From Macrostomum lignano (taxonomy: Eukaryota): a DNA stretch of 36,666 nt. Below, one piece after another: positions 21,894 to 35,990 of this stretch. The position numbers and the translations under genes were made by a program. Below the pieces are notes generated by a model, which saw nothing but the letters and a program-made list of their open reading frames with translations, did no database searches and was not told the DNA's origin. Numbering within the stretch: the stretch's first letter is position 1; every line of letters starts with the position of its first letter. Where the stretch lies: the NCBI GenBank assembly GCA_002269645.1, contig NIVC01004733.1, positions 1 through 36,666 of the forward strand, in the 5' to 3' direction.

Positions 21894-24148
21894 TCAAAAG
21901 TCGGAGTCTTTCACGCTCTGCTTCAAATAGGCGGTGTACAGCTCCTTCCGCTGGGCTTCCACAAAGCCGGTCACGTGATCGCTGACCTGGCCGAGGCGGC
22001 GCCGCTCAGCCCTGGTGAGCCGCTTGGCGGTGCGGCCGCACAGGCGGGCGAGGACAAAGCAGAACAGGGCAACAGCGGCCACCCCGCCGAACAGGTGCGA
22101 ACTGTACTCGGCCGGGAAGCGTCGATAGAGCGGCACGAGAAAGTCGTGCAACGGAGTCGAATAGCCTAGAAACTGGATAGCAACAGGTTGGGAGACGCAA
22201 ATGGCGAGCAGTACGGGCAGCACGAGGGCCAGCAGGCTGAATAGTAGGAAACGAAATCTGGCGCCGCAGTTGGCGCGACCGCGGGCGGCGTCGGCAGCGA
22301 TGTCTTCGTGGCAGCGACGCGAGATCAACTGGGGGGAGGGGAGGGGTTGACAGGCTGTGTCTCGATCGATAACACTCAGCATACATGCGCAACCTTGGGA
22401 ATCACTCGGCCGTTTCTATTGGCAACACACACACACACACACACATGTAAGTCGCTATTGGCTGAGAGCAGTCACGTGACTACTATTCCGTCCAATAGCG
22501 ACTTACATATGTGTGTGTGTTGCCAATAGAAAAGGCCGGGTGAATCCCTAGGTTGCGCCCAAGTATGGATAACAGGATCTTGAAAGCAACAGGAAGATAA
22601 TAGATCAACCTCTGATCAACTGGAAGACAATGCCTGTCCATGAGCATCTTGAAGACAATGCCTCAGTCTATGAACATCTTGAAGACACAGTCTCAGTCTA
22701 TGAGCATCTTGAAGACAATGTCTCAATCTACTAGTCTTGTATGAGAATCTTGAGGACGATGGCTCAATCTATGAGCATCTTGAAGACAATGACTCAATCT
22801 ATGAGCATCTTGAAGACAATGGCTCAATCTATGAGCATCTTGAAGACAATGACTCAATCTATGAGCATCTTGAAGACAATTCCTCAATCTATGAGCATCT
22901 TGAAGACAACGCCTTAATCTGTGAGTATCTTGAAGACAATGCCTCAATCTATGAGCATCTTGAAGACAATGACTCAATCTATGAGCATCTTGAAGACAAT
23001 GGCTCAATCTACGAGTATCTTGAAGACAATGTCTCAATCTATGAGCATCTTGAAGACAATGGCTTAATCTATGAGTATCTTGAAGACAATGTCTTAATCT
23101 ATGCGCATCTTGAAGACAATGCCTCAATCTATGAGGATCGATCTTGAAAAGAATGTCTCAATCTGTGAGTATCTTGAAGACAATGCCTCTATATAAGAAT
23201 ACTTGGAAGATGACTTAAGTTTTTTCTAACCTTGCAATCGTGCTCAAGCGCATTCAGAGTATGCTGCAGCGTCATCTGAATAGCCTTGTCAATAGTTTTG
23301 GCGGCTTCGTCGATCTGATTGACGCAACGAGTCGGCTTGGCCCGATTGGGATTGTAGATGGTGTGAATGTCGAAGCAGGTCCGATTTAGAGACGGCCATT
23401 TGCACACCTCCTGGGTGATCTGCATCAGCACGCGCTGTCTGTCAGTTTCGTCGCCGCTCTCGTCGGCTTTACTTAAAAAGAAGACGATTCTGTCACGATC
23501 AATCCTATCGCCAATATCTGCCAGGATCTGCATAGTGCGCTTGCACAGCGCCTGACCGATGGGGTCAAAGAAGGCGAACACTAAATCGGCTTGAACAGCC
23601 AGCCAAAGCAGCACCCGGTTCACGTCGAACGCGTACGACATTGAGCCGTCGACTAGACCGGGCGTGTCAATAAAGGTCACGAGAGCGAATCTTTTAGCAA
23701 TGCTGTCGCACAGCTCTGTGCTCAGATTCGACACTACGCCGTCAAATTTTCCTAGCGGAGCCAGCTGAGGAAACAGGTGCAAAGTGGCGTTGCCGCTAAG
23801 CGATTCTCGGCGTTTACCCTGTGTTACTATGGTGATACCTTGCGTCTCAATAGCAACGCCTTCCTTCTGGATCTGTTTCTCAATATACCAATTGATAAAG
23901 GCGCTCTTCCCAGCGGAGTGATTGCCAATCAATAAGACTGTGATTTTCTTCCTCGGTGGTAACAGTTTCACATTGACTAGCTGGGCCAGCTTTGCCAGGC
24001 CATTTTCTTCGTTGGCGTACAGATGGTGGCACTCCTTCAGAATTCGCTCGTTAGTGGCCGTACTGCCCAGACTGTCAACTATGTCGCTGCCGCCTCCTCC
24101 GCTGCGCTTGCTGGCAGCTGCGCTCGAATTGGACTTGCTGTTCGACAT
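21894..24148 (-). CDS. Dynamin/EHD(sarcalumenin)-type P-loop GTPase with C-terminal transmembrane segments, 2 exons, ~450 aa
   Basis: Exon 24148-23231 (G1 GNHSAGKS, G3 DTPGLVDG, G4-like FLSKAD) splices in phase 0 (AAG|GTTAG ... ccccag|TTG) to exon 22328-21894, which has two hydrophobic stretches and a stop. Confidence 0.85.
22387..22558. mobile_element. Fold-back element / MITE, ~70-bp inverted arms, in the GTPase intron
   Basis: gcgcaaccttgggaatcactcggccgtttctattggcaac(ac)n atgtaagtcgctattgg mirrors ccaatagcgacttacat atgtgtgtgtgttgccaatagaaaaggccgggtgaatccctaggttgcgc. Confidence 0.8.
22615..23200. repeat. 30-bp minisatellite (gagcatcttgaagacaatgactcaatctat)n in the GTPase intron
   Basis: Tandem copies; source of the YEHLEDNDSI and HCLQDAHRLS pseudo-ORFs. 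Confidence 0.95.
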
Positions 24149-24299
24149 GCAACACATTAAAGAAATGTCAAGGATAGACTTCATAATAATGAAACTCGGA
24201 CGACATTTTCTAAAAACTATTAAAGAATGAAAGAATTTATTTCTTTTTTATTTCTATTATATTATATTTCTACTATTTTTACTATTACTACCATATGAT

Positions 24300-24555
24300 A
24301 GACTTAGCAGACTTTGAGATATTTCTAAGAAAGCTGGCAGACTCGGAGACATTTCTAAAAAAGATGGCAGACTTGGAGATATTTCTAAGAAAGATGACAG
24401 ATTTGGAGATATTTCTAAGAAAGATGACAGACTCGGAGATATTTCTAAGAAAGATGACAGATTTGGAGATATTTCTAAGAAAGATGACAGATTTGGAGAT
24501 ATTTCTAAGAAAGATGACAGACTCGGAGATATTTCTAAGAAAGACTTGGAGATGC
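24300..24555. repeat. 30-bp minisatellite (atttctaagaaagatgacagatttggagat)n
   Basis: About 8 tandem copies between the SET-domain exon and the GTPase start. Confidence 0.93.
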
Positions 24556-24744: not shown

Positions 24745-25529
24745 TCAAACAGTTACAATATTACACCAGATGTCAATCAGTTGAACACAGTTACTAATTA
24801 GCCTACAAATCTCATGATGAGATTCCATAGCCAGTTTAACAAGCCAATTCCGGTCGCGAAGTAGTTCAATCTTCAACGCTTTGTACATCAATCGGAGTTG
24901 ACGCCGGACGCAATTCGTCAGCTGATCTTCGCTCATGGAGTGTACAATATCAATAAGACGCTTGTCCGTTGATTCAGAAAGAAACACGAGCAGCAATAGC
25001 AGATAGTAGCTTGGCCCGTCAACAGACAAATGAATGTACTTTAACAGCAACAGACGATCGGATAAAAGTGCATCAGCCGGAGGACACATGCCAATATGGG
25101 CAAGCTGGTTCAAGAAGTCAACAATGTGCTGCTGTTTAGCAGACAGTACATCTGCTACATTGCTCAAACTCACAGGCACGCAGTCGTGCTCAGTAGGATT
25201 AGTCGACTCGAGAACAAAATCGTATTCTAATAGTAGCGTCAAGTTGCTATGGTTACCGTAGTTAATATAGACCTGGTCGCCAGCTTGATAAGCTGTTTTA
25301 GTGGTTAGCACTAGAGAGCGCGTCTCGGTGTTGAATGAGGTCACCGCGGACACGGCTGGCGAGTGGTTGAACAGGTCGAAGTACGGGACCAGGGCGGGCC
25401 GGTTCAGGCCGGGGCAGTGGACCACCCTGTGGGCGGCGAGAGGTTGGATCATCTGTTGCATGAGCAAATAGACAGACAGGCAGCGGCAGATGGACAGACA
25501 GGCAGGCAGGCAGGCAGACAGACAAACAC

Positions 25530-25572
<43 letters not shown>

Positions 25573-25966
25573 GGCAGGCAGGCAGGCAGACAAACACACA
25601 GACAGACAGACAGGCAGACAGACAGACACAGACGCTAAGACAGTCAGACAGACAGCCAGCCGACAGACCGACAGACAGACAGGAACAGGCAGACAGACAC
25701 AGCAGACGGAAACATAGACAGACAGACAGCGAGACGGACAGGCAGACAGCTAGCTACAGCGATCAGTCCGCACTCGGTCACAGCAATAAAGCTTAGCCCG
25801 CAGACACAAACCTTGTATTAGTCCAATGGCAGCAAGCCAGCCACATTTGATGTCGATTGTGCTGCAGCGCATCTGCAGGCGCAGCGGCCAGCCAATCAGA
25901 AGCCAGCGCAGCCAGCCGATCAATCAGCAAATCGGTTGCGTAACCCAGCCAATCAATTGTTGGTTG
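24745..25966 (-). CDS. SET-domain protein methyltransferase (SETD4/Rubisco-LSMT-like), C-terminal two exons only
   Basis: Exon 25966-25812 ends WLACCHWTNT-AG|GTTTGT and joins in phase 2 to cccacag|G at 25426. This gives WTNTRVVHCPGLNRPALVPYFDLFNHSP...VYINYGNHSNLTLLLEYDF, matching the SETD3/4/6 NTR...ALxPxxDxxNH...YG..N..L..YGF pattern. The N-terminal SET half was not found. Confidence 0.75.
25465..25750. repeat. (AGAC/AGGC)n microsatellite in the SET gene intron
   Basis: Seen directly. Confidence 0.95.
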
Positions 25967-26009
25967 CTGGAAATTACGTGTAAAAAAACACTTTAGTAGG
26001 ATTCTTAGA

Positions 26010-26320
26010 AACTGAAAAGTAAATTCAACACATTCTAGAAACTAAAAAGTACATTCTACAAACTGAGTCGAAAAGCATTATCTACACACTATGCGACTAT
26101 CAGATGAAAAGTACATTCTACATACCACAAGATAAAAAGTACATTAATAGATACCATACACTCTACACACTCCATGAGATGAAAAGTACACTACAGTCTA
26201 CATACTCCATGAGATTAAAAGTACACTCTCACTCTATAAGATGAAAAGTACACTCTACACATTCTGAGATGAAAAGTACACTCTACACATTCTATGAGAG
26301 TAAAAAGTACATTCTACACA
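26010..26320. repeat. Degenerate ~30-bp minisatellite (gatgaaaagtacactctacacatt...)
   Basis: Recurring aaaagtacattctaca core. Confidence 0.8.
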
Positions 26321-26461
26321 TCCTATAAACTTCTTTATTCCCGCTGTTTGCTGCCTGGAGTTCAATCTGAAAGGCAAAATGATGATAAGAAATATTGAAA
26401 TAATTTGAACCGATATCTAGTATAATGAGACATGTTTTCTCAAAACTGATCAAACACGCAC

Positions 26462-26559
26462 TCAGAGAGCTGGGGTTAATTTCAAATAAACCGCGAAAGC
26501 ACAAAACACTTTTTTAAAGAATTTGCTACAATCCGGTCTCAAATGTTCAACTTCATCAT
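26462..26559 (-). ncRNA. Box C/D snoRNA family B copy 1 (LSU rRNA guide, yeast Cm2948/snR69-equivalent site)
   Basis: ATGATGA ... TTGAACAT-TTGA(D') ... AACCCCAGCTCT-CTGA. CCCAGCTC is antisense to the conserved LSU GAGCUGGG. Confidence 0.85.
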
Positions 26560-26747
26560 GTGTTTAGAACGTGAAATGCTTAATAACTAAATATATATAG
26601 ATAGTTTCGTAATACTTACTTTATAACTTGGAACAGAAGACCGAAAATTTTACAAGGGAAATCTGAAATAACAAAATTTTTGACGAAAAGTTAAACATTC
26701 TAAGAAATCCAATAGGTCTTAAAATAATAATATAAAATCAAAGAGTC

Positions 26748-26849
26748 TCAGAGAGCTGGGGTTTAATTGCAATTTTTAGCTTTTGGATAAACAAATAGGC
26801 TTAATATTTGTCTAGCACTAAAGCAGTTCAAATGTTCAATTGTCATCAT
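26748..26849 (-). ncRNA. Box C/D snoRNA family B copy 2
   Basis: ATGATGA, TTGAACATTTGA, TAAACCCCAGCTCT-CTGA. Confidence 0.87.
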
Positions 26850-27495
26850 ATTGTTTTTGTGCAAAAGTAACGTTTTAAAGTGAATCGCACGACAGCCCCT
26901 GAACTATTCAATTTTCGTGCACAAACCGCAGGATGGGCCACTCAGCACATTTGCGTGCAAGCTACTTTCAGTTCAGTAGTAAGTAAGTAGTAAGTAGGAA
27001 GTTTATTGGCTCAGTCTTACCCCTCCTTAAGAGCGTAATCCTTCCAACGGCGCCTTTTCACACTAACCCCCCGCCCGCCCCAATTTTCATTGATTTCTCG
27101 GAATTCCAGCCTAAAGCTGCCATGTACATTCAGTAGACTGGCTAATGTACATTATTGCTGAACCAATTAGCAAGCTTGTGGGCTTCTAATCTTATCGAAG
27201 TTATTTTAGCTGCCTTTATTTTTATAAAATAGCTTATGTATTCTTCTCTACTACTGTAGTGAAAGTAGAAAGCTGTTTTGCTAAGCATTCAAGCGGCTTT
27301 TTGAATCTTCTTAATACCAAAAACATGGAGTTTTACAGTATTAAATTACGAGCGTACTTTCCAAGTTATTAGTATGTCACTTACTTTAACTGTTGAGATC
27401 AGTTTCCATCTAAAATTGGATGTTAAAATTACTTGTTAAAAAACACAAACTTTGACGCGAAAAGATAAAAATAAAAATGAATGAGTAGACAATTT

Positions 27496-27567
27496 TCAGT
27501 CTCATTAAATCAGCTTTCGAATGATCATCAGAGATTAAATCACTCAACTATGTAAATCTTTCATCAT
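27496..27567 (-). ncRNA. Box C/D snoRNA family A copy 1 (18S Am99 guide; SNORD57/snR51-type site)
   Basis: ATGATGA, D' TTGA, C' CTGATGA, guide AGCTGATTTAATGAG-A-CTGA antisense to 18S CUCAUUAAAUCAG. The +5 rule targets the A equivalent to human A99. Confidence 0.92.
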
Positions 27568-27762
27568 TTTCAACCATTTAATAACTCAATTTTTTTTCAT
27601 GATTAAAAAATCATTTTTTACTTACTGATATTATCTTTAAATTCCAATTTTCGACTTCAGCTTCAATTAATTAGTTCTAAAAGAAATAAAGAAAAAATAT
27701 CATGAGAAAATGTACGAGAAATGTAGATATTATTAAGTAATGTTATCGCAGAGTGCAAAATA

Positions 27763-27831
27763 TCAGTCTCATTAAATCAGCTTTAGTGTAAGGTCACGGT
27801 TGTGATCAAATATTTAATAAAGTATCATCAT
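27763..27831 (-). ncRNA. Box C/D snoRNA family A copy 2
   Basis: ATGATGA ... AGCTGATTTAATGAGACTGA. Confidence 0.92.
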
Positions 27832-28013
27832 ATTGATATTGGGTTTTGATATTTAAATAAATTATGAACTTACTTAATTGTTACAAGAGCAATCGAGAAA
27901 CAAATAAGGCTCCATGTGCGATCTGAAAAATAAACAGCCCTGTGTATTTGGTATATCAAATTTAATTTAAGTATTTTAAATTATTTTAAAAGTTTTATAA
28001 TACTGTATAATTC

Positions 28014-28098
28014 TCAGAGAGCTCGGGTTTATATCAAAGATAAAAGTACACCATTCGCTTGTACGATGAACTTTAGTCAACTGTTCGATTTTCATCAT
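28014..28098 (-). ncRNA. Box C/D snoRNA family B copy 3
   Basis: ATGATGA, TCGAACAGTTGA, TAAACCCGAGCTCT-CTGA (one extra nt inside the guide core). Confidence 0.82.
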
Positions 28099-28308
28099 AT
28101 TTTTACGTTTAATGAAGTGAAAAATATATAACGAAATTAAACATGAATAAGAGCTATTGCTTACACTTTAGCCAATTTCCAATCAAATTTGAGTGTTTTC
28201 AGCAAGTCTAAAAAATAGAAATGTTTGTTTATTAAGATCAAATTATTTTGGTTACGAAAAGTGCATGTAGCCAAATCAAAAGTACAAAAATATAAGTTCA
28301 ACGAAAGT

Positions 28309-28376
28309 TCAGAGAGCTGGGGTTAATATCAAATAGTCGGATGGAATCCTGCATTCAAATGTTCAAAGGTCATCAT
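28309..28376 (-). ncRNA. Box C/D snoRNA family B copy 4
   Basis: ATGATGA, TTGAACATTTGA, AACCCCAGCTCT-CTGA. Confidence 0.87.
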
Positions 28377-28573
28377 ATTTGGAAAAATATCGTAGTTAAA
28401 AATACAACGAAAAGTATGATCGAACTAACTACTTACAGTAGATCAAATTTATTGACTTTCGCAGAATCTTCTCGAAATGAACACTGAGGTCTGCAATAGT
28501 AAAAAAAGGAATAGTTCAGTGGCAACGATATTAACAACTTCCAACTCCTAATCTAAGCTCGTATAAAGAATTG

Positions 28574-28637
28574 TCAGTCTCATTAAATCAGCTTTTGTGT
28601 TAATCACAAAAATATTCATGAAATATAAATTCATCCT
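28574..28637 (-). ncRNA. Box C/D snoRNA family A copy 3 (variant box C AGGATGA)
   Basis: Intact guide plus D box AGCTGATTTAATGAGACTGA; box C is degenerate. Confidence 0.8.
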
Positions 28638-28821
28638 AAAAATGTTTTAAAAATAAAATGAGTACTACTATTTCACACTTGCATTCTTACCTAGTCGATG
28701 TCATGAACCATGGTAATTTTTTCTCGATTTCAATGCCTGCAAATGCAAAGGCGAGACTGTAATGCTCCAAATTTCAAATAGAACAAAATTCACATTCAAA
28801 AACCAAATATAAAATCACTAT

Positions 28822-28905
28822 TCAGAGAGCTGGGTGTTATTATCACTTAGAAAACAATGAGCCACTAAAAGTGTCCATTGCTATCGAATGTTCGAATGTC
28901 ATCAC
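28822..28905 (-). ncRNA. Box C/D snoRNA family B copy 5
   Basis: GTGATGA, TCGAACATTCGA, TAACACCCAGCTCT-CTGA. Confidence 0.87.
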
Positions 28906-29091
28906 TTTTAATACTGAACGGAGTACAGTAGCTTCCAAAAATAACACGGGGCAAGCTTACCATTGGCAATGAAATAGAAGTACTTCATCAACAAATCTAA
29001 AATTGGAACGAATTGCAGAGCTGTAGCGTAACAGCATGTGAATTTTGAATAAATACCTGCGAAAAAATTTTACGAACACAGAAATGCTATT

Positions 29092-29159
29092 TCAGTCTCA
29101 TTAAATCAGCTTTGGATTGCAATCACATTGCGATCATTTATTGTTTAAAAATTCATCAT
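29092..29159 (-). ncRNA. Box C/D snoRNA family A copy 4
   Basis: ATGATGA ... AGCTGATTTAATGAGACTGA. Confidence 0.92.
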
Positions 29160-29326
29160 CAGCAAATCTACGAGTACATTAAATTAAACTTTACCAGAAA
29201 AAAACGTATTAGAGTTTCAGATACGCAAAGGGAGAAATTAACCCCGTACGTATTATGGGGAATGGAGGTTGTTGTCACTTTAAAACCAGTCACAAGCTAT
29301 ATGCGGATAAAGTAACGCTAGTGGGC

Positions 29327-29777
29327 TAGGGATTGCAATCCCGGGATCCCGGGATTTGGGACCCCAAATCCCGAAACTAATTTTTGTTAATATTTTTTAC
29401 AAAAAGTGCTGTAATATAAACATAATTAGGCCCACAATTAGTTTATTATACTGCGCTAATTTCCGTTAATTGCCTCACGTCGCGTGGCACCTTTTTAAAC
29501 CCCGCATCATAGATTTAAATGTGAAATTAATTCCAATTTAAATTTTGATATAATTTGCTTTTTTACTACTAATTAGTACATTTATACTACTTACTTTAAT
29601 GGGTCACAAGATAATGCTGTTTATCATCTACAAATAGATCATTATCTCTATAACAATAAAAAAGTAAGCAAAAAAGCGTTTAGCGCATATTTTGCCTTAA
29701 AATTTCAACCTAAAAGCATAAAAATCTGTATTATTCTGATCCCGGGATCATAAAAATCCGGGATTTTGCAATCCCTA
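29327..29777. mobile_element. hAT-like MITE (~450 bp) inside a snoRNA-host intron
   Basis: TIRs tagggattgcaatcccggga / tccgggattttgcaatcccta, with CCCGGG subterminal motifs. Shares the TAGGGAT terminus with 2400-3781. No 8-bp TSD; only gggc on both sides. Confidence 0.72.
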
Positions 29778-30313
29778 GGGCACAAAATAACCTAAAAATG
29801 GGGTGGGGCTTGGCTTGGGGCGACCAACCAAAAAATCGATAACAACACTGACTCACTCCGTGCCTTGGGGGCTGTTAGCTGGTGGGGCTAATGGTGGGGG
29901 CAGATAAGATAGGGAATTTGGTGGGGTAAGACGCCAGCGAGAAAATCGATAAAGCTCTCTTACCCATCCCGATTCCACACTCGCTTGCTACAGTAAAATG
30001 GGGTTAGCGGAGTGAGGTTGGGTTTAGATAGGGACGGTCGACCATAAAATCGATAAATCTTTTACTCACTCACGACTCACAAGGCCTCAGTGGAAAACTG
30101 ATGCAAAAAGTTAAATAATTAATAACACAGTTAATAGGAAATAAATTACACTTACCCTATGACGTGCAATTTAAGCAGTAACTTGATCTTTTACACACAA
30201 ACTGGTCTTAAAACTGCGACCTGTAACAAAAATAATGGCTGTGCATGAAATTTCGATTAGCTAATTTCATTAAAATAGGTGTATTAGTACTAGGTTGGGT
30301 TCTAAACATTGCT

Positions 30314-30408
30314 TCAGAGAGCTGGGTGTTAATATCAATTCGTAAAACTAATAAGCCACTTGTTAGGTGTTTATTAATAATTACGTTCTAATGTTCAAGT
30401 GTCATCAT
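30314..30408 (-). ncRNA. Box C/D snoRNA family B copy 6
   Basis: ATGATGA, TTGAACATTAGA, TAACACCCAGCTCT-CTGA. Confidence 0.87.
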
Positions 30409-30608
30409 GTGCTTAAATATCAAACAGTAATTGCTACTGAAGAACAGTAATAAAAATGAAAAAACAAGCTTACCAGATATCAGTTCCATTACAGCCGAAA
30501 TCCAATCCTGGAAAAATGAAATAAAATATAAAGCTATTGATTGTTTTAAGTAAATGTAATTCAAGAAAATGAGTTCTGTTTGAACAAATAATTGCTACTG
30601 ATAAGCAT

Positions 30609-30679
30609 TCAGTCTCATTAAATCAGCTTCAGGTTACACTCATAATATTTGAGGTCATTTATATAGAGATTGTCATCAA
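30609..30679 (-). ncRNA. Box C/D snoRNA family A copy 5 (box C TTGATGA)
   Basis: Guide plus D box AGCTGATTTAATGAGACTGA intact. Confidence 0.88.
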
Positions 30680-30876
30680 AGCTGTATTCATAAAATCCTT
30701 TGTTCTACTAAATTTAGTAACTAATAATGCAATTGACTTACCTATCTTCTTTAACACATGAACCGATAATACACTGTAGAGGTCCTAAAACAAAAGGAGC
30801 AGGTTGATAGGAAGATCGATATTAAAAATAGAAGCTACAAACTATATTTATAATAAAGTTTCCTGGCTCTAAATAT

Positions 30877-30950
30877 TCAGTCTCATTAAATCAGCTTTAG
30901 ATTGCAAAAAGTCACGATTCTATTTTTGCATACAATAATTTTATCATCAT
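30877..30950 (-). ncRNA. Box C/D snoRNA family A copy 6
   Basis: ATGATGA ... AGCTGATTTAATGAGACTGA. Confidence 0.92.
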
Positions 30951-31017
30951 TAATATAGGCCAATAACTGTAACATTAAAAGTGGGAATATTAACAAACCT
31001 CATCTGGTATTGATAGT

Positions 31018-31115
31018 TCAGACGGTAATTCTTGTTTAATTTCAAGGTACTCACGAGCAACTATAAACAAATATAGTCACTCTCTAGACTCAAATTAGAC
31101 ATTCGAGGTCATCAT
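31018..31115 (-). ncRNA. Box C/D snoRNA family C (18S Um627 human / Um578 yeast site; SNORD65/snR77-type)
   Basis: ATGATGA ... GAATTACCG-T-CTGA. The guide is antisense to 18S CGGUAAUUC; the +5 rule hits the U immediately after the G530-equivalent. Confidence 0.82.
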
Positions 31116-31869
31116 TGATAAATCTCTTACTAATAAAAGTTTACATCTAAGCATACAAAACTACTCACAGTTTTAAACAGTCAATCGACGTCTTTTAGCA
31201 GCAGTAGACAGACAGATCCAGCCGGTTGAAATTAAACTAATTGAGTCACCATAGCTATAACAACTAAATACTGCACTGAATATTTCATGAAAAAAATAAA
31301 TACAAGACTTGTACTACAATTTTAATTAAAAAATGTTTTTTGGTACTTAAATACAATAAACTGTGTCAACACAGTAAAAAAAACTACAATAGGTTTGTAA
31401 CAAACGAATAAAAGAGATATTTATTAAATACATATACAGACATTACAACTTACAAGTATCTGATATATAAAAAATGTTATGCGTCACAGCCAGTGGACAC
31501 ATGCTACCTATAAGTTCTCTTACTCTTAAGAACATTACCTAGAAAAAATGTAAGTACTTTAGTCTTGTAAAATGAAACAACACAAAAATAACAATGGACG
31601 GAATGGTGGAATGTCTAATGTATAAGATACTTCAAATTGTTTTTAAATACAGTTGAATTTAATATTCACAACTTAGGTTCGCAACGATTGATTCGGTGCT
31701 ATAATCTAAAGATATCAGATATCTGCAGGTTTCTAACTAATCAGCTGCGCAAGACAATACAATTTATTATGTACGAGTAATTCATGATATTTAGTCAGTT
31801 AACTATTTCGTTCTACAATCGATCAAATTTAAAACTTTTAATCTCGCAGCTCAAGCAACTGGAATTACT

Positions 31870-32690
31870 GGATATCTGGAAGGCTGTCCCACCAACTGAG
31901 GATCTGGGATGCTGGTCCAGAAAATGAGGATCTGGGATGCTGGTCCAGAAAATGAGGATCTGGGATGCTGGTCCAGAAAATGAGGATCTGGGATGCTGGT
32001 CCAGAAAATGAGGATCTGGGATGCTGGTCCAGAAAATGAGGATCTGGGATGCTGGTCCAGAAAATGAGGATCTGGGATGCTGGTCCAGAAAATGAGGATC
32101 TGGGATGCTGGTCCAGAAAATGAGGATCTGGGATGCTGGTCCAGAAAATGAGGATCTGGGATGCTGGTCCAGAAAATGAGGATCTGGGATGCTGGTCCAG
32201 AAAATGAGGATCTGGGATGCTGGTCCAGAAAATGAGGATCTGGGATGCTGGTCCAGAAAATGAGGATCTGGGATGCTGGTCCAGAAAATGAGGATCTGGG
32301 ATGCTGGTCCAGAAAATGAGGATCTGGGATGCTGGTCCAGAAAATGAGGATCTGGGATGCTGGTCCAGAAAATGAGGATCTGGGATGCTGGTCCAGAAAA
32401 TGAGGATCTGGGATGCTGGTCCAGAAAATGAGGATCTGGGATGCTGGTCCAGAAAATGAGGATCTGGGATGCTGGTCCAGAAAATGAGGATCTGGGATGC
32501 TGGTCCAGAAAATGAGGATCTGGGATGCTGGTCCAGAAAATGAGGATCTGGGATGCTGGTCCAGAAAATTAGGATCTGGGATGCTGGTCCAGAAAAAGAG
32601 GATCTGGTGGCTGGCCCAGCAACTGAGGATCTGGGAGGCTAGTCCAGAAAATGAGGATCTGGTGGCTGACCCAGCCGCTGAGGATCTGCA
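31870..32690. repeat. 28-bp minisatellite variant (tgaggatctgggatgctggtccagaaaa)n, 24 apparently identical copies at 31897-32568
   Basis: Homogeneous core; edge units revert to the gaggctggcccagcaac type. Confidence 0.96.
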
Positions 32691-32819: not shown

Positions 32820-33533
32820 TCAAGCAATGGTGGTTTGGCCGGCGTTCCTCCTTCGCAACTCGGTACCCTCGAAGGCATTGTTATAATAGACGTAGCCGTC
32901 TTCCCTGGACTCGCCAGACTGATCCAATCCGTCAGCATTGAAATACTCCATCTTGTGGTGAAACTTCAATGCCTGAACAGTTTGAAACACTTTGATAGTG
33001 TACAGGCCCATGATCACTTCTAGCAGTACGAATATGAATTCCACAGAGTGCATGACGATCTCGAAGGGATTCACCAGCAGATAATAGTTGAATAGAAAGA
33101 AGCAGATAGCTGGCAGCTGTATAATAGTCGTGATAAGCCAACTACCGGCTAAATCGGCAATATTCTCCGACAGATTGCCGAAGTAGCCAATGTAAAGCCG
33201 GATGAATTCCAGGATGCAATACAAGCAGAACAGGGCGATCAATATTGGCTGATAGATGTAATTCAGCTGGCTGTACTTGTCAACTATGGACAATAGGAAG
33301 CCGACAATCCAGAATGGAGCAAAGAATGCGTTGAAATAATACACAATCTGCAATGGCAGGAAGGTGGCGTACTCAAGCCCTGTGCGGCCAGTCTGTAAGC
33401 GGATCTTCTCCAAGTCCTGCTTGCGAACTGGGAACATTTGATTGGTCATGCGGCCCATTGCTGACCGCCAGGTGCCTTGCAGGCGTTGCACAGCCTGGCT
33501 GGCTTGCTGCTGCATGCTGTTCATTGTGTTCAT
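32820..33533 (-). CDS. TMEM17: Ciliary transition-zone transmembrane protein TMEM17 (intronless CDS, 237 aa)
   Basis: LPLQIVYYFNAFFAPFW, EFIRLYIGYFGNLSE, LAGSWLITTIIQLP and four hydrophobic helices match the TMEM17/Transmemb_17 family. Confidence 0.9.
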   Translation of the reverse strand: MNTMNSMQQQASQAVQRLQGTWRSAMGRMTNQMFPVRKQDLEKIRLQTGRTGLEYATFLPLQIVYYFNAFFAPFWIVGFLLSIVDKYSQLNYIYQPILIALFCLYCILEFIRLYIGYFGNLSENIADLAGSWLITTIIQLPAICFFLFNYYLLVNPFEIVMHSVEFIFVLLEVIMGLYTIKVFQTVQALKFHHKMEYFNADGLDQSGESREDGYVYYNNAFEGTELRRRNAGQTTIA

Positions 33534-33644
33534 TTGGTCTGCTTGGGTTTCTGGCGATGCTGCTGTCTAGCGATATCACTGCTTGTCTGCTTCAGTTGTT
33601 CGAGCGTAGGCATGAAAAATCATATAAATCACTATTCAGCTGTA

Positions 33645-34370
33645 ACTGCCTGGAATCTGGGAGCCCAGAAACTGGGGATCTGGGAGGCTGGCCCAGCAAC
33701 TGAGGATCTGGGAGGCTGGCATAGCAACTGAGGATCTGGGAGGCTGGCCCAGCAACTGAGGATCTGGGAGGCTGGCCCAGCAACTGAGGATCTGGGAGGC
33801 TGGCCCAACAACTGAGGATCTGGGAGGCTGGCCCAGCAACTGAGGATCTGGGAGGCTGGCCCAGCAACTGAGGATCTGGGAGGCTGGCCCAGCAACTGAG
33901 GATCTGGGAGGCTGGCCCAGCAACTGAGGATCTGGGAGGCTGGCACAGAAACCGGGGATCTGGGAGGCTGGCATAGCAACTGAGGATCTGGGAGGCTGGC
34001 CCAGCAACTGAGGATCTGGGAGGCTGGCCCAGCAACTGAGGATCTGGGAGGCTGGCCCAACAACTGAGGATCTGGGAGGCTGGCCCAGCAACTGAGGATC
34101 TGGGAGGCTGGCCCAGAAACCGGGGATCTGGGAGGCTGGCCCAGCAACTGAGGATCTGGGAGGCTGGCCCAGCAACTGAGGATCTGGGAGGCTGGCATAG
34201 CAACTGAGGATCTGGGAGGCTGGCATAGCAACTGAGGATCTGGGAGGCTGGCCCAGCAACTGAGGATCTGGGAGGCTGGCACAGAAACCGGGGATCTGGG
34301 AGGCTGGCCCAGCAACTGAGGATCTGGGAGGCTGGCCCAGCAACTGAGGATCTGGGAGGCTGGCCCAGCA
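33645..34370. repeat. 28-bp minisatellite (ctgaggatctgggaggctggcccagcaa)n, ~25 copies, 5' of TMEM17
   Basis: Tandem copies; same family as 15040-15500 and 31870-32690. Confidence 0.96.
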
Positions 34371-35077
34371 AGAGTAATACTAAAGCTTTCACTAAAGCTA
34401 AATTTCGAAAGAACCATAACTAGCAGCGCTTTGATATGTTTTGTCTAAAAATATAACAAAACTGAAAATAAAATCTAGAAAGCAACATATTTATTGTGTG
34501 TGAATGGTGAACTAGAACACCGGCCGTGCGCAGCTAACAAAGCTTTTGAGTAGATTGCTGAATAACGGAAAAATTGCTGTTTGAGTAAATAACAGCCATA
34601 TAAACACGTCTGACAAGTTAACGGTTAATTATCAAGGACAACAAAAAATTCTAGAACAAAATACATAAAAGGTTTCAAAGATGCAAACAAAAATTTTGTA
34701 GTAAAAAAGAAAAATTTGACAGAAATTACAAACTTTAAGCTGACAAATCCAGGATAATATAGCGCATAAACTATGTACTAACCATGAAGGGACTACGAGC
34801 CTGACTCTAGTCGTGTTCGCAACAAGGTACAATTAGTATTGATAATAAGCAGGATTTGAAATCCAACAGTGCCTAATATACAGACTTAACACGACGTATT
34901 GGAGTGTTGTACATCGAGTTCGAATTGAAAATCTACTAATGTACGCATGCTGCGTTAGCTAAGGTTAGCTCAATAAATATACAGCATACGTGTAGGAGCT
35001 GTTTTGATCTATTTTAGCTCACTCAGGGCCGCTACACCAAAGAAAGACAGGTGGTGAAAAAATGACTTTTAAGAACT

Positions 35078-35081
35078 GGGG

Positions 35082-35126
<45 letters not shown>

Positions 35127-35187
35127 GGCAGACAGACAGACAGACAGGCACACACTAAAACACTGAGACAGCCAGACAGACAGCCAG

Positions 35188-35242
<55 letters not shown>

Positions 35243-35271
35243 GGCACACACTAAAACACTGAGACAGCCAG

Positions 35272-35346
<75 letters not shown>

Positions 35347-35578
35347 GCCAGACAGACAGGCAGACAGCCAGACAGCCAGACAGACAGACAGACAGACAGA
35401 CAGCCAGACAGACAAGCAGAGAGACAGACAGACAGCCAGACAGACAGACAGCAGGCAGACACTAAAACACTAAGACAGCCAGACAGACAGACGGACAGAC
35501 AGACAGCCAGACAGACAGGCAGACAGACAGACAGACAGGCACACACTAAAACACTGAGACAGCCAGACAGACAGCCAG

Positions 35579-35641
<63 letters not shown>

Positions 35642-35886
35642 GCCAGACAGACAGGCAGACAGCCAGACAGCCAGACAGACAGACAGACAGACAGCCAGAC
35701 AGACAAGCAGACAGACAGACAGACAGCCAGACAGACAGACAGCAGGCAGACACTAAAACACTAAGACAGACAGACAGACAGACGGACAGACAGACAGCCA
35801 GACAGACAGCCAGACAGACAGCCAGACAGACAGCCAGACAGACAGACAGACAGACAGCAGGCAGACACTAAAACACTAAGACAGCC

Positions 35887-35931
<45 letters not shown>

Positions 35932-35990
35932 GGCAGACAGACAGACAGACAGACAGGCAGACAGGCAGACAGCCAGACAGCAGGCAGGCG
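35078..35990. repeat. (AGAC/AGCC/AGGC)n microsatellite with a periodic acactaaaacactgag spacer (higher-order repeat)
   Basis: Seen directly; the spacer recurs about 6 times. Confidence 0.95.

Follow-up and report, generated by a model that had tools for sequence, protein, structure and literature searches.

Genes that host several snoRNAs in their introns have a textbook architecture and are known from flies, vertebrates and fungi. The vertebrate hosts UHG (U22HG/SNHG1) and GAS5 carry about 8–10 different snoRNAs, and a 5'TOP start as well as NMD sensitivity are documented for them. In Drosophila melanogaster seven lncRNA hosts of the Uhg type are described, of which Uhg4 has seven snoRNAs (PMC11014333, PMC9710044). 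The UHG-like C/D clusters I–V of Neurospora crassa, reported in a paper that also discusses gas5 and UHG, have ORFs of 159–267 bp and place their snoRNAs 41–60 nt from the 5' splice site (PMC2780460).

Here we analyzed a window of 36.7 kb (the whole stretch of DNA under study) from Macrostomum lignano and found that its minus strand between 26315 and 31250 is predicted, with a probability of roughly 85%, to be a snoRNA host gene of the UHG/GAS5/Uhg type, non-coding and with multiple introns. The reading as a splicing-dependent non-coding multi-snoRNA host is supported by every sequence-only test. The host looks like a new member of this class and is a solid but ordinary find, because the gene type is well known in all three groups. 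The first-pass annotation had suggested that ordinary gene annotation would miss such a host; this holds for protein-gene calls, since neither public copy of the locus has a gene annotated there.

The spacings in the array are of the kind that promotes the processing of intronic C/D snoRNAs, which in this gene class lie some tens of nt before the branch point. They agree with the published rules for intronic C/D snoRNAs and with UHG-like genes (PMC2780460, PMC11014333). With the Drosophila Uhg genes the array shares a non-coding multi-exon host, short exons, C/D snoRNAs in successive introns and the presence of several isoforms of one guide, which are often found there within a single gene (PMC11014333, PMC9710044). 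Like the vertebrate hosts it has one C/D snoRNA per intron (here in 11 of 12 introns) at a constrained distance to the 3' splice site and a spliced product with short ORFs only. In the vertebrate genes the snoRNAs are conserved more strongly than all other parts; in M. lignano this is seen against other intron sequence, while the comparison with the exons gives p=0.16. The vertebrate genes carry different snoRNAs and the M. lignano array repeated isoforms. The Neurospora clusters resemble it as non-coding hosts with short ORFs and intronic C/D snoRNAs (PMC2780460), the distance to the donor being 42–66 nt in M. lignano. However, the predicted M. lignano array differs from the fungal clusters, which are RT-PCR-validated, in its snoRNA content; it differs from the Drosophila genes in belonging to the Platyhelminthes, in a host without sequence homology, in three guide specificities amplified 6 + 6 + 1 and in one intron with two snoRNAs.

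Exon–intron organization of the predicted host

We predicted 13 short exons on the minus strand (Table 1), the internal ones 25–65 nt long, with 12 introns of the GT...AG kind between them; the last exon carries AATAAA. The donors read GTAAG in 11 of 12 introns and GTGAG in the first, all 12 acceptors are YAG behind a pyrimidine-rich tract, and all but one of the 12 introns have a YTNAY branch-point candidate 20–44 nt from the 3' splice site. GTAAG was counted 15 times on the minus strand, for which base composition predicts 4.9 occurrences, and 6 times on the plus strand. Each of the 12 predicted introns contains a snoRNA unit, 11 of them one and intron 1 two; U12 is in the long intron 11 (about 720 nt). 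From box D to the 3' splice site we measured 92, 101, 93, 95, 85, 83, 101, 91, 86, 86, 85 and 95 nt, so that the distance is constrained to 83–101 nt for 12 of the 13 units; 10 of them have box C at 42–66 nt from the donor, out of 13 units in all. The exception to the 3' spacing is U1, which has to share intron 1 with U2; the two are separated by 67 nt that contain no exon. The minus strand of the array contains nine strict modules of donor, box C, box D, acceptor and exon; none occurred on the plus strand, elsewhere in the window or in 300 shuffles. All numbers quoted in the first-pass annotation for the box C/D units, the short exons, the splice sites with their GTAAG donors and polypyrimidine-YAG acceptors, and the spacings were reproduced, and the AATAAA that it placed in the terminal exon was located. 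Upstream of the first donor we found no clear 5'TOP tract, and no pure pyrimidine run is visible there.

Table 1. Predicted exons, box C/D units and further features of the array (positions in the window)
Feature	Position	Strand	Remark
Exon 1	31169..31250	-	3' end set by donor GTGAGT at 31168; 31250 is the 5' end guessed in the first-pass annotation
U1, single-copy C/D unit, 98 nt	31018..31115	-	box C ATGATGA to box D CTGA; intron 1
U2, family A	30877..30950	-	SNORD57-like; shares intron 1 with U1
Exon 2, 43 nt	30742..30784	-	predicted splice sites
U3, family A	30609..30679	-	box C TTGATGA
Exon 3, 34 nt	30474..30507	-	predicted splice sites
U4, family B	30314..30408	-	putative guide to LSU site equivalent to yeast C2948
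Exon 4, 65 nt	30156..30220	-	predicted splice sites
MITE-like insertion, ~460 nt	29327..29789	.	in intron 4; bounded by inverted repeats (I16)
U5, family A	29092..29159	-	5-bp terminal stem
Exon 5, 36 nt	28961..28996	-	predicted splice sites
U6, family B	28822..28905	-	family B guide
Exon 6, 46 nt	28691..28736	-	predicted splice sites
U7, family A	28574..28637	-	degenerate box C AGGATGA
Exon 7, 54 nt	28437..28490	-	predicted splice sites
U8, family B	28309..28376	-	sole copy with good D' guide, 12 bp to SSU GAGUGUUCAAAG
Exon 8, 43 nt	28165..28207	-	predicted splice sites
U9, family B	28014..28098	-	guide variant CCCGAGC
Exon 9, 49 nt	27874..27922	-	predicted splice sites
U10, family A	27763..27831	-	best SNORD57 score, 28 bits
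Exon 10, 51 nt	27626..27676	-	predicted splice sites
U11, family A	27496..27567	-	SNORD57-like
Exon 11, 25 nt	27385..27409	-	predicted splice sites
U12, family B	26748..26849	-	in intron 11
Exon 12, 43 nt	26620..26662	-	predicted splice sites
U13, family B	26462..26559	-	clear terminal stem
Exon 13, terminal	26315..26366	-	3' end approximate
Poly(A) signal AATAAA	26334..26339	-	in terminal exon; kept in homeolog

Divergence from the homeolog and coding potential

We compared the array with its homeolog (L001) and observed that the snoRNA bodies differ at 26 of 1044 positions (2.5%) and the other intron sequence at 145 of 2453 (5.9%), the bodies being better conserved (Fisher p=7e-6). The exons differ at 20 of 529 positions (3.8%), which in this comparison with one close homeolog gives p=0.058 against other intron sequence and p=0.16 against the snoRNA bodies. 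The GT of every donor and the AG of every acceptor (12 each) are unchanged, exon 1 and its donor are kept apart from an 18-nt indel, and the terminal exon is identical as far as the start of a downstream minisatellite. Among the units, U7 is identical to its counterpart, U1 shows one mismatch and a 6-nt indel, the U9 guide CCCGAGC reads CCCCAGC in the homeolog, and an 8-nt deletion there has removed box D from the counterpart of U3. The MITE-like insertion is missing from the homeolog (alignment gap 29789–29327) and is outside the conserved gene structure.

These data bear on a different organization: a tandem snoRNA cluster, either polycistronic or with independent transcription, from which endonucleases would free the units as they do in plants, in yeast clusters and in trypanosomatids. 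No splicing would take place, and the ‘exons’ would be spacers. We consider this very unlikely: the 12 consensus donors and 12 polypyrimidine-YAG acceptors are strand-specific and stand at fixed distances to boxes C and D, all 24 splice dinucleotides are kept against a 5.9% difference in the surrounding intron, and a single AATAAA follows the last unit, even though tandem arrays of repeated snoRNA isoforms are known from such clusters too, U1 and U2 lie close together with no exon between them, and the conservation of exons and introns is not significantly different.

The predicted spliced exons add up to about 620 nt with stops in every frame, and the longest ATG ORF comprises 50 aa. When the joined exons were translated in three frames and compared with proteins, no match was returned, in line with the earlier claim of a non-coding host; as an indirect look for ORFs of spliced transcripts this search was likewise negative. 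That the function resides in the spliced exon RNA, acting as a regulatory lncRNA or a micropeptide mRNA with the snoRNAs as passengers, appears quite improbable. The lower divergence of the exons compared to other intron sequence, the identical terminal exon and the presence of the 50-aa ORF would fit such a product; however, part of the exon conservation is expected to be explained by splice-site and exon-definition constraints, the best-conserved class is the snoRNA bodies, and the stops in every frame and the missing protein match speak against a coding role. Taken together, consensus splice sites, spacings, snoRNA conservation and coding potential all agree with the architecture of splicing-dependent snoRNA hosts that had been proposed for this locus.

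Three types of box C/D unit and their predicted rRNA targets

Box C/D units were sought as a RUGAUGA box close to the 5' end followed, 60–110 nt on, by a CUGA box close to the 3' end. We observed box C as RTGATGA in 11 of the 13 units (the exceptions, U3 and U7, are given in Table 1), box D as CTGA in all 13 and a span from box C to box D of 64–102 nt. Terminal stems serve to join boxes C and D in a kink-turn. Clear ones of 4–5 bp are present in U5 and U13; in the other units they are short, offset or absent, as is common among intronic snoRNAs. The claim of 13 snoRNAs stands as to the number of units on the minus strand, but these fall into only three sequence types (1 + 6 + 6), and two units share intron 1, so that the array has three guide specificities and not thirteen. 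Family A (U2, U3, U5, U7, U10 and U11) is marked by a 19-nt element with 6 occurrences versus 0 expected, and family B (U4, U6, U8, U9, U12 and U13) by a 13-nt element with 6 occurrences versus 0.05 expected. Among the paralogs only boxes C, D', C' and D and the guides are invariant, while the remainder is scrambled. A search against Rfam gave nothing at gathering thresholds over the array, and family B and U1 matched no Rfam family.

For the rRNA targets we required at least 10 nt of antisense ending next to box D or D' and took the nucleotide opposite nt5 as the target, using four eukaryotic rDNA units from metagenomes, which are heterologous to M. lignano. The rRNA-antisense guides that had been proposed are clear in family A and good in family B when bulges are allowed, but only modest in U1, all with respect to this heterologous rDNA. 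The 15-bp family A guide forms a duplex of 15–20 bp with SSU CTCATTAAATCAGTT of the heterologous rDNA, ending 1 nt from box D and placing nt5 opposite an A at SSU position 98–101. Over the whole heterologous rDNA units the equivalent of SSU A99 is the top-ranked family A site by a wide margin. In human, SNORD57 is the guide for SSU-A99 (PMC10911272). Scored against Rfam SNORD57 (RF00274), family A reaches 21.3–28 bits (E 0.01–0.75), short of the 47 bits set as gathering threshold. The D-guide core CUGAUUUAAUGAG and the predicted target nucleotide are common to family A and SNORD57, whereas the 5' half of family A is unrelated and its D' box reads GUGA or AUGA without a conserved D' guide.

Family B pairs through a core of 8–9 bp with 3–7 further pairs past a 1-nt bulge or mismatch. 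Its predicted site, LSU GAGC*UGGGUUUAG, came first with each of the six guide variants in one complete rDNA unit; in another it ranked first or second. By ungapped matching, family B (8–9 bp core) and U1 (10 bp) performed no better than shuffled guides. The predicted C is located 26 nt 3' of the A-loop G in 100 of 102 LSU loci and, judged by this position, the putative target equals yeast LSU C2948, the snR69 site, which adjoins the peptidyl-transferase centre. Methylation of yeast C2948 by snR69 has been described (PMC10899779). Like snR69, family B would aim at the C of GAG-C-UGGG, 26 nt 3' of Gm2922; unlike it, each flatworm copy pairs through a bulge or mismatch, and family B shows no sequence-family match apart from a weak one to snoR69Y (E=8). 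The common target may reflect homology or convergence. The D guide of U1, GAATTACCGT, forms 10 bp with GCGG-U-AAUUC in the SSU 530 loop of the heterologous rDNA, the top-ranked duplex in two rDNA units, and U1 contains an internal 11-bp hairpin (z=-2.7).

Some of these features would suit a decaying relic, in which most copies are pseudogenes and any methylation is carried out by snoRNAs encoded elsewhere: U7 has a degenerate box C, the U9 guide is mutated, the homeologous U3 is without box D, most family B copies have eroded D' guides, and every family B guide is imperfect. However, the 19-nt and 13-nt elements are invariant across old, otherwise scrambled paralogs, the snoRNA bodies change less than half as fast as the introns and the splice sites are intact in both homeologs, which makes such a relic extremely unlikely.

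Proposed maturation and growth of the array

From what is established for the UHG/GAS5/Uhg gene class we propose that RNA polymerase II would transcribe a minus-strand precursor of about 4.9 kb, from which the spliceosome would take out 12 introns. The excised introns would be debranched and then trimmed by exonucleases to the C/D core protected in the snoRNP, the assembly of this core being favoured because box D precedes the 3' splice site by ~85–100 nt. The spliced poly(A) RNA of ~0.6 kb, which has no real ORF, would probably be a disposable by-product, and the products would be 13 box C/D RNAs of about 70–110 nt and of three kinds. Stable box C/D RNAs are in general bound by fibrillarin, Nop56, Nop58 and Snu13. 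The six SNORD57-like RNAs may guide 2'-O-methylation at the SSU adenosine that corresponds to human A99, the six family B RNAs may guide methylation at the LSU cytidine corresponding to yeast C2948, with U8 also aiming its D' guide at the SSU, and the U1 RNA would be aimed at the U of its 530-loop site. The array probably grew by tandem duplication of exon-plus-intron modules and would be under birth-and-death evolution, with some copies degenerating.

The locus matches contig NIVC01000497.1 of assembly GCA_002269645.1 at 99.5%. A flanking gene is TMEM17, 98% identical to an M. lignano protein.

Composition and predicted splicing architecture of the array

We counted 13 box C/D units on the minus strand of the array, with a spacing between box C and CTGA of 64-102 nt (coordinates are listed in the table). 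Box C reads RTGATGA in 11 of the 13 units, TTGATGA in U3 and AGGATGA in U7, and each unit carries CTGA at its 3' side. By sequence the units fall into three types, namely U1 and two families (A and B) of six members each. The 19-nt element of family A occurs six times in the whole window compared to 0 occurrences expected by chance, and the element of family B six times compared to 0.05 expected. We observed 12 predicted donors (11 GTAAG and one GTGAG) and 12 polypyrimidine-YAG acceptors, which form 13 exons with internal exon lengths of 25-65 nt and an AATAAA signal in the terminal exon. The distances from box D to the 3' splice site are 92, 101, 93, 95, 85, 83, 101, 91, 86, 86, 85 and 95 nt, and the donor lies 42-66 nt from box C in 10 of 13 units; exceptions to the spacing are U1 and U2, which share intron 1, and the long introns 4 (1159 nt) and 11 (~720 nt). 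All 13 units, the short exons and the AATAAA-bearing terminal exon described in the first-pass annotation were recovered, and both of its spacing ranges were reproduced exactly. An extra exon candidate was left out of the conserved model, as it lies within a MITE-like insertion absent from the homeologous copy of the locus.

Features of the array and its surroundings
Feature	Position	Strand	Remarks
Array (predicted host gene)	26315-31250	minus	
U1	31018-31115	minus	only one copy
Family A: U2, U3, U5, U7, U10, U11		minus	common exact 19-nt element GCTGATTTAATGAGACTGA
U3	30609-30679	minus	
Family B: U4, U6, U8, U9, U12, U13		minus	common CCCAGCTCTCTGA, one variant
AATAAA, terminal exon	26334-26339	minus	
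MITE-like element, intron 4	29327-29789		~460 nt
Spurious exon-like segment	29595-29647		within MITE-like element
Direct repeats, intron 4	29799-30066		three copies of ~105-110 nt
Extra sequence, intron 11	26900-27384		~480 nt, upstream of U12
Minisatellite	26001-26321		28-35-nt units
High-identity tandem arrays	22593-23189, 24308-24544, 25470-25749, 31897-32662, 33663-34371, 35082-35980		
Long spurious ORFs (examples)	33592-34417, 35019-35753		
Dynamin/sarcalumenin-like GTPase exon	23189-24184	minus	flanking protein-coding
SET-domain protein exon	24745-25629	minus	flanking protein-coding
TMEM17 ORF	32820-33533	minus	single exon, just upstream of array; 98% identical to Macrostomum lignano protein

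Nine strict modules of donor, box C/D unit, acceptor and exon were found on the minus strand of the array; its plus strand, the rest of the 36.7-kb window and 300 shuffles yielded none. The minus strand has 15 GTAAG and the plus strand six, with 4.9 predicted for the minus strand by base composition. The spliced exons comprise ~620 nt if the 5' end is arbitrarily set at 31250; they contain stops in all three frames and their longest ATG-initiated ORF spans 50 aa. Comparison of their three-frame translation with a protein collection gave no match and was uninformative. Folding of families A and B was no better than that of shuffled sequences, which is expected since guides must stay single-stranded. 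A search of the entire window against Rfam at gathering thresholds returned no matches, and E-value scans of small pieces covering family B and U1 yielded nothing beyond noise hits such as TtnuCD15, SNORD45 and SNORD19B, each at E>1.

Judging from the sequence, we consider the array to be a splicing-dependent, non-coding host gene of multiple snoRNAs with a probability of roughly 85%. This reading, already proposed in the first-pass annotation, fits the splice sites, the spacings, the non-coding exons and the selective conservation of the snoRNAs. Following the established behaviour of such hosts, the snoRNAs would be released from the excised introns and the spliced RNA would be a by-product. 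An unspliced polycistronic cluster is less likely, as it is contradicted by splice sites that are strand-specific and conserved. In proliferating stem cells of this regenerating species the spliced RNA may act as a GAS5-like regulator by virtue of its conserved exons; that the exon RNA is functional is nevertheless the less likely explanation, as nothing requires it.

The vertebrate genes UHG and GAS5 are hosts of the same class. Seven Uhg lncRNA hosts are described in Drosophila (PMC11014333), and in Neurospora UHG-like clusters show the same 5' splice site distances as the flatworm array (PMC2780460). The locus would belong to a well-known class and its architecture itself is not new; our literature search found no paper on flatworm snoRNA host genes. 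Mildly unusual are the amplification of only two guide specificities, six times each, the interrupted guide helix in every family B copy and the presence of two snoRNAs within one intron, features that would not surprise a specialist. Our understanding of snoRNA biogenesis remains unchanged by the locus, which provides a clean and testable UHG-type host architecture in Platyhelminthes. For this regeneration model the annotation gain amounts to 13 predicted snoRNA genes, or ~25 counting the homeologous copy. In the public records NIVC01000497.1 and NIVC01000137.1 no gene is called across the array, in line with the earlier expectation that ordinary annotation would miss it.

Locus copies and selective conservation

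Comparing the window with NIVC01000497.1 (GCA_002269645.1) we observed a 99.5% match. With only four mismatches and 53 small indels over 13.9 kb, the two sequences represent one locus, apparently polished differently. One of the differences lies within the U13 guide (CCCC versus CCC); such differences look like assembly polishing and matter for reading exact guide sequences. A second, syntenic copy with the gene order TMEM17, array and SET-domain gene was found on NIVC01000137.1, the homeologous contig. The homeologous locus has the flanking genes in the same order (GTPase, SET-domain, TMEM17); further upstream, the public contigs carry a diacylglycerol kinase.

In order to compare the paralogs we aligned the six members of each family. 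Family A retains box C, one internal NTGA and 21 nt of guide and box D without change, and family B retains box C, GAACAnTnGA (D' guide and D' box), a C'-like TGATAT, and guide and box D. Outside these functional elements the paralogs of each family have diverged almost to randomness. Since only the functional elements are invariant, the units are old duplicates under selection on boxes and guides. Between window and homeolog, 26 of 1044 positions differ in the snoRNA bodies (2.5%), compared to 145 of 2453 in the other intron sequence (5.9%; Fisher p=7e-6) and 20 of 529 in the exons (3.8%; p=0.058 versus other intron sequence). This tally was made in window coordinates, and the coordinates of NIVC01000497.1 gave the same result. 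In the homeolog the GT of all 12 donors and the AG of all 12 acceptors are retained, and its terminal exon including AATAAA is identical. That the array is a dead relic is less likely, given the selective conservation, which contradicts it.

Some copies look decayed or redundant. An 8-nt deletion in the homeologous U3 takes out box D, so that this copy is probably dead; the U9 guide reads CCCGAGC in the window and CCCCAGC in the homeolog; and box C of U7 is weak. The homeolog pair shows birth-and-death of redundant snoRNA copies, with a lost box D, a mutated guide and a MITE-like insertion in an intron. U11 carries GAGGCTGA in the homeolog and GAGACTGA in its window counterpart, and the homeologous U1 has a 6-nt insertion.

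Predicted rRNA targets

Targets were searched in four complete eukaryotic rDNA units, which Rfam annotated among the many eukaryotic rDNA contigs of a metagenome scan and which are heterologous to M. lignano. Anchored guide matching without gaps, in which G-U pairs and a single mismatch were tolerated, proved too permissive: because shuffled guides reach 10-15 pairs, it was replaced by ranking of duplex energies. Three specific rRNA 2'-O-methylation sites are predicted, which can be checked by RiboMeth-seq.

In three of the four rDNA units family A pairs with SSU CTCATTAAATCAGTT over 15 bp, of which 13 are contiguous Watson-Crick pairs; in one unit the duplex reaches up to 20 bp. The duplex stops 1 nt from box D and nucleotide 5 faces an A at SSU position 98-101. 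By duplex energy this site is top-ranked with a wide margin. Compared with Rfam SNORD57 the family scores 21-28 bits, which is below the gathering score of 47, and the guide is common to both. Human SSU-A99 is guided by SNORD57 (PMC10911272).

Without gaps, family B pairs with LSU GAGCUGGGUUUAG over only 8-9 bp and an extension, no better than shuffled guides do. Duplex energies with a bulge allowed placed this site at rank one for each of the six guide variants in one whole rDNA unit; in another it was ranked first or second, and the competitors there lie in non-conserved regions. In 100 of 102 LSU loci the predicted target C is located 26 nt on the 3' side of the A-loop G; counting from yeast Gm2922 it corresponds to yeast C2948, which is methylated by snR69 (PMC10899779). 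In U8 the D' guide of family B pairs with SSU GAGUGUUCAAAG over 12 bp, the sole convincing case; erosion has left 6-9 bp in the remaining copies.

The D guide of U1, GAATTACCGT, forms 10 bp with SSU GCGG-U-AAUUC in all four rDNA units. In both units scanned by duplex energy this site is top-ranked, and it is statistically weak on its own. We take the target to be yeast U578 and human U627, a numbering for which no literature source was found. A double guide in U1 (TTATAGTTGCTC|GTGA to LSU GAGUAACUAUGA) was dropped as probably coincidental: the segment is locked in a stable 11-bp internal hairpin, GTGA reads GTAA in the homeolog and the LSU match includes two G-U pairs. A match of a viral contig to a 21-nt 18S string was also dropped, as it is not rRNA.

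It seems rather improbable that the array is, as a joint reading, a macrostomid-specific dosage device, in which one non-coding host in two homeologous copies provides ~12 copies each of two guides. One guide would install Cm at the LSU equivalent of yeast C2948, adjoining the peptidyl-transferase centre, and each family B copy would pair through a bulged or mismatched duplex. In vertebrates this site is not known to be methylated. If the reading were true, interrupted guide helices would be in routine in vivo use by fibrillarin snoRNPs, and flatworms would have kept the C2948 equivalent as an ancestral modification of eukaryotes.

Repeats within and around the array

The MITE-like element is bounded by terminal inverted repeats (TAGGGATTGCAA...TTGCAATCCCTA), contains CCCGGGAT palindromes in its interior and may be flanked by a GCCC target duplication; it is a recent insertion, because the homeologous copy is without it. 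The direct repeats of intron 4 are relatively GC-rich, each contain AAATCGATAA and are present in both homeologs; they may be an old repeat or transposon fragment. Searching the extra sequence of intron 11 against Rfam at E<=10 gave no H/ACA or other family. A GC-rich stretch (GGGGCGGGCGGGGGG) and segments prone to hairpins lie in this sequence, whose conservation in the homeolog reaches 92-97% in places. The minisatellite (...GATGAAAAGTACAC...) begins directly past the predicted poly(A) site and differs in copy number between the homeologs. Tandem arrays of the window consist of 28-30-nt units in up to 27 copies and of (AGAC)n in up to 225 copies, and yield long spurious ORFs on both strands. 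A 28-nt array between TMEM17 and the host gene is mostly missing in the homeolog.
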